A stretch of 63,179 bases of DNA, filler included, from Lenisia limosa (Eukaryota; Protista; Breviatea): NCBI GenBank assembly GCA_001655205.1. It is 12 parts of 12 records of this genome, joined end to end, with 100 filler letters (N's around TTAATTAATTAA, not from the genome) between each part and the next. Parts side by side here need not be neighbours in the genome. Positions count along the whole stretch, not along the records: positions 14,007 to 16,731 come from LPNZ01010874.1; 11 more parts are not named here. One strand, written 5' to 3'. The notes below the pieces were generated by a model, which worked only from the letters and a program-made list of their open reading frames with translations, searched no databases and was not told the DNA's origin. Within the stretch, counting starts at the first letter, position 1; every line of letters begins with the position of its first letter. This document shows, one piece after another, positions 13,738 through 16,959 of the stretch. Position numbers and translations under genes: made by a program.

Positions 13738-14074
13738 GTATGGCGGATTGGTGTGACTTTCAATTTTAGGGTGTTTCCTTTTTTAGGGTGAACTTTCCTT
13801 TTTATGGTTCCATTTTTGGGGTCTGGTCTTTCCTTTCAATTTGCGTTATTGTCCTTTAAGAGCTTTCTTTTTCAGGCCATATTTCCTTCGTTTAACCCCC
13901 GTGATTNNNNNNNNNNNNNNNNNNNNNNNNNNNNNNNNNNNNNNNNNNNNTTAATTAATTAANNNNNNNNNNNNNNNNNNNNNNNNNNNNNNNNNNNNNN
14001 NNNNNNACTCAATAAGGCATCTTTCACCTTCGGAGTTGCCCCTCCTTTCCCGGGTGTCTACACTTTGGTGCGAG

Positions 14075-14135
14075 GCTATCTTGGGTTATCTTGGATTATC
14101 TTGGGTTATCTTGGGTTATCTTGGGTTATCTTGGG
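14075..14135 (+). repeat. 10-bp tandem repeat (ttatcttggg, about 5-6 copies)
   Basis: Direct reading. Confidence 0.85.
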
Positions 14136-14374
14136 TGATTTTAAGGGCTCATCTAAAAAAGGGGGTGGCAGCGTCTGTAGTAATTTTTTGAACAAAATTT
14201 GAAAATAAAAGGTCAATTTTGCCTTCGCATTTTTAGACAAGCCATTTTAAGGGTGTTTCTCCTCGATTTTGGTACTGCGTTCTCAGATATCAACTCATTT
14301 GGTTGTCTATCGGGTGTGTGCACTTTTCTGCCGTGTATTTTAAAGTTATGACCCCCTAATAGGTTGCCTCAGCA

Positions 14375-16720
14375 GGCGATCAGCTTTCCGATGAGTACAC
14401 TTTTACAGCCACGTCGCCCGCCCCGGTTCTAGCTTTCGTCACTCCACCTGTTGGGGGGGGGGGGGGNNNNNNNNNNNNNNNNNNNNNNNNNNNNNNNNNN
14501 NNNNNNNNNNNNNNNNNNNNNNNNNNNNNNNNNNNNCTTATCATACCTTTACCCCACCCCCCATCCCCAGGAATACACTCCAGGAACAGATGGATACCTT
14601 GGGCACATCTTCGATGTCCAACCTGTGGTAGGCTATCACTGTTGTTGTGGGTTACTATAATCCAATATCTCTTATAAGCATGATGGTGTGAACGGCTTAG
14701 ACCAGATACAACCTTAATTTTTTATTTCTCATTTCTATATCATTTAATTGGCTCATTTTTCTTAGGAATATTTCATGTGGTACAGAATATGAATTTCGGA
14801 ATCATGATGATTTGTTTAGAACTACACTTTAGCCTTTTTTTAATAGGTTTTGTGACTATTTGAAAGGCGTTTATTCTTTAGATCAACGTCGGAGGTCTTG
14901 AGAACTTCTATGTCACCGCTTATGCAGAGTAGGGAGACTTAGCTATAGAATCATTATCCCAAATCTGATTTATCTTTCGCCTTATCACACACAGGACTAT
15001 CAACACCACGTGCACAGATGGCTTCCTTTACGGTCACACAGTCGGACCCTCCAGTGCGACTGGTGGGGGGGGGGGGNNNNNNNNNNNNNNNNNNNNNNNN
15101 NNNNNNNNNNNNNNNNNNNNNNNNNNNNNNNNNNTTCTCAATAAATCTTCGATAAACATTGGTATTTTACCGGTTTGGACCGTGGGGAAGCCTTGTGATG
15201 GGTGTGGATGCATACTGTAGCTTTCTTGTCAAATCTCATTTTTACCCCTTTAGGAGAAATTGCCTTCACTGATTTGGCTCTTTCTGGAGGGCAAGTTGGG
15301 TGCTTCTATGTCCTGAAGTTCTGCGTACATGACCAATGCCTCACCAGCCCTGAGACCTTCGTCCTGGAATAGTGGGGGTTGTAATAGTGTAGTAGAGGAA
15401 TAGTTTAAAACAAACTCATTGCATCTCTGGCCAACAGAGTTTATTTTGGGCTTTGTTTTTGTGTTATCAATCCTTGTGTGCTGTCAGCCAACAGAGTTGG
15501 TTTTAGGCTGTTTTGTTTCATAAATTTTCCAANNNNNNNNNNNNNNNNNNNNNNNNNNNNNNNNNNNNNNNNNNNNNNNNNNNNNNNNNNNNNNNNNNNN
15601 NNNNNNNNNNNNNNNNNNNNNNNNNNNNNNNNNNNNNNNNNNNNNNNNNNNNNNNNNNNNNNNNNNNNNNNNNNNNNNNNNNNNNNNNNNNNNNNNNNNN
15701 NNNNNNNNNNNNNNNNNNNNNNNNNNNNNNNNNNNNNGTGGAGGTTGACAGCGGTATGGCTGGGAGGCTGAGGAAGTAATATTTCGTGCATAATATCAAT
15801 ATTGGTTATATATACTATATTGATACATGTATAAGGCTTCACTTCGGTTCAAAAAAGACCGGTCAATTCAAGTATCTTTTGTTTTCAAAGAAACTACTCT
15901 CTCACTGTATAGCCCCGAGCACGGCTGCGCATTGGGACGTCCTCGCCTCTATCGGCGACGGTGGGGGGGGGGGGGGNNNNNNNNNNNNNNNNNNNNNNNN
16001 NNNNNNNNNNNNNNNNNNNNNNNNNNNNNNNNNNNNNNNNNNNNNNNNNNNNNNNNNNNNNNNNNNNNNNNNNNNNNNNNNNNNNNNNNNNNNNNNNNNN
16101 NNNNNNNNNNNNNNNNNNNNNNNNNNNNNNNNNNNNNNNNNNNNNNNNNNNNNNNNNNNNNNNNNNNNNNTGAAGAATATTGGCGTGAAGGTTCTTATCA
16201 CGAACCGAATAATGTGAGGTGAATGATGATGGTGGGTATTTGAGTAAAGATGGTATTGATGCGGGACTTGGTATTTAAAATTCCCCTAGTGTTCAGTTTC
16301 ACTATTCAGGAAATGCCGAAGTGTCATCAGGCTACAAAGTCACGATCGCCAAATCCGAGTACGTTTTTGTTGCCCCACTATCTTGTCTTTTATCAATTGT
16401 CTTTAACACCATCTTGCCTTTATATTACCCCCCCCCCCCNNNNNNNNNNNNNNNNNNNNNNNNNNNNNNNNNNNNNNNNNNNNNNNNNNNNNNNNNNNNN
16501 NNNNNNNNNNNNNNNNNNNNNNNNNNNNNNNNNNNNNNNNNNNNNNNNNNNNNNNNNNNNNNNNNNNNNNNNNNTTTTACCCTTTTTGCTTCCAACCCTC
16601 ATATGTTAAATATTCAGCCAACGGAGTATATTTTGGACTGTTGTCCCTCACCCCCTCCCCTAGAGCTGATTTCGAGCGTTTTTTATTTAAAACGTTTTAT
16701 CCCCCCCCCCCAGACTGAAC
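14375..16720 (+). CDS. Multi-exon hypothetical, probably extracellular, protein (partial)
   Basis: Exons GDQLSDEYTFTATSPAPVLAFVTPP|EYTPGTDGYLGHIFDVQPV|INVGGLENFYVTAYAE|TINTTCTDGFLYGHTVGPSSAT|GEIAFTDLALSGGQVGCFYVLKFCVHDQC; beta-strand-rich; no family recognised. Confidence 0.55.
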
Positions 16721-16959
16721 GAGTACGCGTTNNNNNNNNNNNNNNNNNNNNNNNNNNNNNNNNNNNNNNNNNNNNTTAATTAATTAANNNNNNNNNNNNN
16801 NNNNNNNNNNNNNNNNNNNNNNNNNNNNNNNGATACAACCTTATTATTTTTTCTCATTGCTATATCGATATAGCATTTGTACATGTGGATTTACTAATGT
16901 TTTATTTGTCCTATTATTTCGTAACGTGCTTACTCCCAAAACTTATCGCTTCCCAGCCG

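Follow-up and report, generated by a model that had tools for sequence, protein, structure and literature searches.

Long G and C runs next to putative splice sites in a repeat-rich piece of the Lenisia limosa genome

In a 2.7 kb piece of the genome of the breviate Lenisia limosa, long homopolymer runs of G or C stand directly beside GT and AG dinucleotides. The piece (positions 14007-16731, from record LPNZ01010874.1 of assembly GCA_001655205.1) is one of 12 joined parts that make up a stretch of 63,179 nucleotides (nt), filler included, which we call the window and along which all positions are counted; it comprises 2063 read bases and five gaps of N's. The runs are present in sequencing reads, have contiguous flanks and directly adjoin GT and AG; sites that resemble acceptors are strand-specific in the piece. 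The interpretation that we favour, and hold only tentatively, is that the runs are real genomic homopolymer tracts located immediately within the ends of short spliceosomal introns, in intron-dense plus-strand genes of a repeat-rich genome.

Position, length and continuity of the runs

The piece contains five uninterrupted runs and one interrupted C-rich tract:

14453-14466, plus strand: G14 run after CCT/GTT, at the left edge of the gap 14467-14536
15065-15076, plus strand: G12 run after CTG/GT, at the left edge of the gap 15077-15134
15963-15976, plus strand: G14 run after ACG/GT, at the left edge of the unbridged gap 15977-16170
16428-16439, plus strand: C12 run preceded by TTATATTA and bordering the gap 16441-16574 (57 real letters)
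16701-16713, plus strand: C11 run (16701-16711) and AG, after TTTTAT; acceptor-like, and may be where an intron beginning at 15961 ends
14552-14568, plus strand: interrupted C-rich tract C4-A-C6-AT-C4, directly followed by AG, the acceptor of putative intron 1

GT (in one case GTT) directly precedes all three G runs, and AG directly follows the only C run with a visible 3′ flank. The initial annotation of the window had read the sites at 14450, 15063 and 15961 as donors consisting of GT and a long G run, with acceptors preceded by long C runs; the GT positions prove to be exact, the G runs measure 12-14 nt, and the C11 run with its AG is an acceptor-like site of this kind within the piece. Base composition predicts 1e-4 G or C runs of at least 11 nt in the read bases, against the five seen. 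A search for GT followed by G10, with at most one mismatch, returned 13 overlapping matches where 0.04 are expected, and no shuffled sequence reached 13. For all three G runs to be preceded by GT or GTT and the C run to be followed by AG, we estimate from the base frequencies of the piece a joint chance of approximately 1e-4.

To test continuity across the gaps, we aligned to the piece the contigs (Logan) of the only public sequencing run that holds this DNA, X1. This run probably derives from the source sample and is therefore not biologically independent, and its contigs come from a different assembler; single-copy depth is approximately 25 (15-30 in the contigs). A 501-nt contig spans 14152-14682 with 30 letters fewer than the window, which makes the gap 14467-14536 40 nt long instead of 70. 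A 746-nt contig spans 14704-15459 with 10 letters fewer, so that the gap 15077-15134 measures 48 nt and not 58. Finally, an 877-nt contig covers both 16171-16439 and 16575-16731, with 57 letters in between where the window has 135 (78 too many). The N gap lengths in the window are overestimates. No bridging X1 contig was found for the gaps 15533-15737 and 15977-16170, the former of which adjoins a repeat with a summed depth of approximately 77,000. Since single contigs cross three gaps together with their runs at a depth of 15-30, the runs are internal to contiguous single-copy DNA.

The observation that N gaps abut the runs, also made in the initial annotation, holds for four of the five gaps of the piece, each with a run of at least 12 nt at its left border; gap 15533-15737, the fifth, begins 5 nt ahead of a C10 run that is present in the consensus of the repeat family continuing there. 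The gaps adjoin the runs because the original short-read assembly broke at them, and the runs thus shattered the assembly into contigs of approximately 400 nt. The bridged gaps all fall within putative introns. Given that the run-side gaps are short (40-57 nt) and putatively intronic, gene models should jump them and read no frame across; for the gap 15077-15134 the length correction is not a multiple of three, so that any reading frame across it in the window is meaningless.

Four runs stop exactly at N gaps, as would be expected if two-colour poly-G read tails or over-extension by a gap filler had been added to contig ends, and close to the end of the first run, at 14465, the window has G where the X1 contig has A, which makes this run G12 followed by AG. 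However, contigs from a different assembler pass through three runs and, at normal depth, carry on into the sequence beyond the gap, the C11 run at 16701 lies away from any gap, a C run at a left gap edge has the wrong polarity for poly-G tails, and adjacency to GT and AG is not expected from an artefact. Because the contigs cross the runs and continue beyond them, a read-tail origin is ruled out, and we rejected assembly artefacts in general as extremely improbable.

A putative intron-dense gene on the plus strand

On the plus strand, six islands of higher GC content, with AG and GT at their borders, can be joined into an open frame of 155 codons that ends with TAG at 15372. They form the gene model below, which is followed by an island of a possible second gene:

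14234-14334, plus strand: putative exon 0 (5′ limit uncertain), ending in phase 1 before GTATTT; open in one plus-strand frame only, and in frame with exon 1
14335-14372, plus strand: putative 38-nt GT..AG intron with a CTAAT branch-like motif and C5, without a long run
14373-14449, plus strand: putative exon 1, GC content 0.57, with one open frame on the plus strand and zero on the minus strand
14450-14570, plus strand: putative intron 1, GTT and G run, then TTTAC, C4-A-C6-AT-C4 and AG; holds the gap 14467-14536, real length approximately 91 nt
14571-14627, plus strand: putative exon 2
14628-14881, plus strand: putative intron 2, 254 nt, GTAGGC..TTTAG, without a long run; holds the high-copy repeat 14653-14740
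14882-14928, plus strand: putative exon 3
14929-14994, plus strand: putative intron 3, 66 nt, GTAGGG..CACACAG, without a long run
14995-15062, plus strand: putative exon 4
15063-15253, plus strand: putative intron 4, GT and G12 at the start, TTTTTACCCCTTTAG at the end; holds the gap 15077-15134, real length approximately 181 nt
15254-15372, plus strand: putative last exon, ending in TAG
15913-15960, plus strand: GC-rich island, possible exon of a second gene, with TATAG before and GT and G14 after

All five model introns begin with GT and end in AG, as does a candidate intron at 15961-16713, which has the G14 run at its start and C11 plus AG approximately 750 nt later. GC content is 0.44-0.57 in the putative exons versus 0.31-0.40 in the putative introns with the runs removed, and T exceeds A on the plus strand. 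A blind acceptor scan (branch-like yTnAy, then at least 75% pyrimidines, then AG) recovered six sites on the plus strand and none on the minus strand, including those at 14571, 14995, 15254 and 16714. That the runs are placed beside GT and AG, at the borders of GC-richer islands resembling open frames, is real and strand-specific. We infer from the sequence that the flanked islands are exons, and consider it probable that islands and runs together reflect plus-strand genes with introns.

According to the favoured interpretation, a G tract of approximately 12 nt would follow GT at some donors on the sense strand, while a C tract of approximately 11-12 nt, or an interrupted C-rich one, would follow a branch-like TTTAY and extend up to the AG as a cytosine-type polypyrimidine tract. 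The two tracts would be independent intron-end signals, which may have arisen through expansion of short G or C motifs. At donors whose sequence in the gene model is otherwise GTRGGN, the G tract could serve as an intronic enhancer or as a U1-proximal element; where both tracts lie in one intron they may pair, but pairing would not be needed. The run-less donors of the model are G-rich as well (GTAGGC and GTAGGG), and the long C run grades into the shorter C tracts of other introns (CCCC, C5 and C4-A-C6). These features suggest that the tracts act in splicing. In short vertebrate introns, G triplets near 5′ splice sites are intronic enhancers, and mammals use C-rich pyrimidine tracts. These elements are the closest precedent in sequence: the piece shows a similar arrangement, with G-rich sequence just after the donor and C just before the acceptor on the sense strand; unlike the vertebrate enhancers, which consist of GGG or GGGG and are often repeated, the runs here are uninterrupted for 12-14 nt.

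Several points weigh against this interpretation. The sample of runs is small (n = 5 within 2 kb), and the 40- and 48-letter interiors of the G-run introns may hide a partner run. Run lengths in the piece are bimodal, at either 4-6 or 11-14 nt with none of 7-10 nt, which fits poorly with gradual slippage; the uniform length of approximately 12 nt and the lack of runs of 7-10 nt are left unexplained by simple slippage. Read on the minus strand, two of the G runs become a C run followed by AACAG or ACCAG and are acceptor-like, and the sequence upstream of these sites is inside gaps, which placed them outside the scoring of the blind acceptor scan. A free search for spliced open frames by dynamic programming did equally well on the minus strand and on shuffled sequences, so that frame continuity proves nothing for the gene model. 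Moreover, the contigs of the RNA run of the same study do not cover the exons, none of the other RNA runs holds the last exon, and no homolog or family was found for the predicted protein.

The protein-level searches behind the last statement gave the following results. The translations of four exons had no match in Pfam, and phmmer with the last exon against 1.84 billion representatives returned just two low-complexity repeat proteins. The ESM Atlas gave weak immunoglobulin (Ig)/filamin-like leads under the trust level, and a comparison of the first with the last exon for an internal repeat at the protein level was not significant (E = 0.64). At the nucleotide level, an Rfam scan of the piece with E up to 1 had no match, and in metagenome, prokaryote-genome and viral collections neither a single-copy exon word nor the repeat consensus had an exact-pattern match (0 in all).

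The piece might instead be non-coding, with GC islands that are not exons and with runs that represent a genome-wide mutational oddity, their GT and AG neighbours being coincidental in a small sample. The absence of a homolog, a Pfam family and RNA among the results above would suit such a region, as would the fact that shuffles yield spliced open frames of this length. Opposed to this are the low joint chance of the GT/GTT and AG adjacency (approximately 1e-4), the six-to-zero strand specificity of the acceptor-like sites and the fact that AG and GT bound the GC islands, and we regard a non-coding piece as very unlikely.

Two further features were noted around the putative genes. Upstream of the first, at 14077-14136, the 10-mer TATCTTGGGT occurs six times in tandem with 96% matches; the unit holds TATCTT, similar to the core RTATCTT that has been reported for U12-type donors of Physarum, with T instead of R in the preceding position. 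At 15872-15912, just upstream of the island 15913-15960, the sequence AA/GTATCTTTTG is followed approximately 40 nt later by TGTATAG/CCCC. No TTTGA branch motif was observed with this U12-like GTATCTTT donor motif. A reported spliced-leader word, looked for by eye only, is not evident in the piece.

Possible pairing between the runs and comparison with known introns

We next consider whether the G run at the start and the C run at the end of an intron act together. The predicted duplex between the G run and the C-rich tract of intron 1 (14450-14570) has an energy of -32.0 kcal/mol, and that between G14 and C11 of the candidate intron 15961-16713 has -32.9 kcal/mol. Intron 4 (15063-15253) reaches -11.8 kcal/mol for G12 with the CCCC at its visible 3′ end, and the introns without runs give -1.7 to -6.9 kcal/mol. 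A strong end-to-end helix is trivially true for any pair of a G run and a C run, and folding of the run-less introns gave no more structure than in shuffles. Where both runs are present, pairing across the intron is predicted to be feasible and would bring GT and AG to within a few nt of each other.

These energies speak for a mechanism in which a G:C helix of approximately 12 bp within one intron loops it out and brings the splice sites together, and on which accurate splicing would depend. The helix would begin 1-3 nt from GT and finish 0-2 nt from AG, and the donors next to the runs (GTTGGG and GTGGGG) match the usual GTRAGT consensus poorly. A precedent, to which the helix would be a G/C counterpart, exists in teleosts and lamprey, whose (AC)m-(GT)n introns have complementary simple repeats at opposite ends (Lin et al. 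2016, PMC4691745). However, the G12 of intron 4 faces only CCCC at the visible 3′ end, an argument against a need for pairing. Of the two well-defined introns with a G run, one thus has no visible C partner, and three more introns of the model carry neither run. The surroundings of the C12 run at 16428 are hidden by a gap, a helix of this strength would make donor positions +3 to +6 and the entire pyrimidine tract inaccessible, and candidate introns with both runs (n = 2) are too few for a comparison with chance. Overall, we find it doubtful that the introns are bridged in this way.

This small sample leans towards independent occurrence, and in its visible sequence the runs are not obligatorily coupled. 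The proposal in the initial annotation that G/C pairing folds the intron thus survives as feasible for intron 1 and for 15961-16713 and is unsupported at intron 4, where no partner is visible; independence of G and C runs, which the same annotation had set against its own idea, is the direction in which intron 4 and the three introns without runs point. A distinct intron class clamped by a terminal G:C helix of approximately 12 bp (GT-G12...C12-AG), with several members per gene and with the helix replacing normal recognition of the donor and the pyrimidine tract, would be a homopolymer analogue of the teleost introns; we consider it unlikely, and obligatory bridging similarly improbable.

The (AC)m-(GT)n introns are the closest functional parallel. 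Their predicted helix loops out the intron, and single instances are not conserved, simple repeats mutating fast (PMC4691745). Intron 1 and the candidate 15961-16713 resemble them in having complementary repeats near both putative splice sites and a predicted loop-out helix. They differ in that the repeats are G and C homopolymers of approximately 12 nt, immediately beside GT and AG, and in that co-occurrence is seen in at most two introns of the piece and is missing from the visible part of intron 4.

Poly-G/poly-C tracts of Caenorhabditis are over-represented, common in introns and almost absent from exons (Zhao et al. 2007, PMC2211496). In C. elegans, 396 such tracts are found genome-wide; they show no positional bias inside introns, and those G tracts that lie within genes are commoner on the non-coding strand (84 vs 47; PMC2211496). 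The present runs are likewise over-represented and lie in putative introns, but differ in other respects: five occur in 2 kb, with sense-strand G at donor position +3/+4 and C at the acceptor, and neither the unbiased intron position nor the G excess on the non-coding strand is found in the piece.

A third comparison is offered by Physarum polycephalum. Its genome is intron-dense with tiny exons, mononucleotide or pyrimidine-rich stretches in introns led to innumerable gaps and to scaffolds of approximately 2 kb, and many introns are described as repeats with splicing signals on either side (Schaap et al. 2015, PMC4758236). The likeness lies in homopolymer-rich introns that break the assembly; an arrangement of GT plus G run and C run plus AG is not described in the passages considered (PMC4758236). 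A literature search for an intron class with GT + poly-G and poly-C + AG likewise found no description, which is no proof of absence.

Should the pattern extend genome-wide, many intron boundaries would be marked by long homopolymers, an extreme and easily recognised splice-site architecture that would represent a new variant of known intron-end signals. It would provide a system for asking whether RNA helices, or proteins that bind G or C tracts, replace the usual donor and pyrimidine-tract signals, and a way to study the upkeep of such mutable tracts.

Dispersed repeats and the origin of the runs

The piece is rich in repeated DNA. The segments 14653-14740, 15463-15532, 15835-15863 and 16171-16281 have summed X1 depths of 6,000-79,000, compared to approximately 25 for single-copy sequence. 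In other genomic copies, 15835 directly follows either 14740 or 15532, and these contig joints indicate that the segments are pieces of a single very abundant dispersed element or of a few such elements. Contigs resembling 14653-14739 and 16171-16217 are present in the RNA run from the same study. In other copies, the family at 15463-15532 (summed depth approximately 77,000) runs on into TTTTA and C10, and a diverged copy of the same family (D3) at 16614-16712 ends at the C11-AG site; given these C10 and C11 runs in a dispersed family, some C runs travel with mobile or dispersed DNA.

Such runs could more generally be the ends or internal parts of insertions (introner-like, like a miniature inverted-repeat transposable element (MITE), or a dispersed short repeat) by which splice signals were introduced or generated. 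The C10 and C11 continuations just described speak for this origin, as do the high-copy fragments scattered over the piece and the run lengths of 11-14 nt with none of 7-10 nt, which suggest a fixed unit rather than slippage; G and C runs are, in addition, trivially inverted repeats. On the other side, the outer bases are asymmetric (GT or GTT at the G runs vs CT at the reverse-complemented C11), the upstream flanks of the three G runs show no relationship and do not align, and no target-site duplication is present beside intron 1 or intron 4. Intron 1 with its flanks is near single copy (depth 30-57 vs approximately 25, at 90% likeness), and the first G run is followed in the contig by AG and not by the TAAAA that the reverse complement of the TTTTA-C(n) repeat would give. 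We therefore judge a mobile-element origin of the runs in general to be distinctly unlikely.

Two specific forms of this origin can be addressed separately. The idea in the initial annotation that the runs are remnants of terminal inverted repeats of transposons is weakened by the GT versus CT asymmetry, by the unrelated flanks of the G runs and by the near single-copy state of intron 1; symmetric terminal inverted repeats with a target-site duplication were not found, and a symmetric transposon-end origin is disfavoured. As to introners, transposon-generated introns have been proposed for the U12-type introns of Physarum (bioRxiv 10.1101/2020.10.12.336362). The present introns are like introners in that their ends form an inverted repeat and in that the genome is rich in short dispersed repeats. 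They are unlike them in having no shared interior in the visible sequence, no target-site duplication, single-copy depth at intron 1 and asymmetric outer dinucleotides, and no near-identical copies in unrelated genes were seen for the visible sequence of the intron 1 region.

The 7-mer CACTCCA occurs at 14441-14447 and 14577-14583, that is, 3 nt before the donor and 6 nt after the acceptor of intron 1, and reads ACT CCA in frame at both places. Since the copies are not adjacent to the intron ends, the pair is probably due to chance or a protein repeat and not a target duplication.

Two more repeated or symmetric elements were observed in the piece. A 29-nt motif, CAGCCAACRGAGT..TTTTGG.CTGTT, is present three times, at 15427-15455, 15484-15512 and 16614-16642; it includes the Sm-site-like ATTTTGG and had no match in Rfam. 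At 15794-15825 there is an AT-rich palindrome of 16 + 16 nt, 81% complementary and without a spacer.

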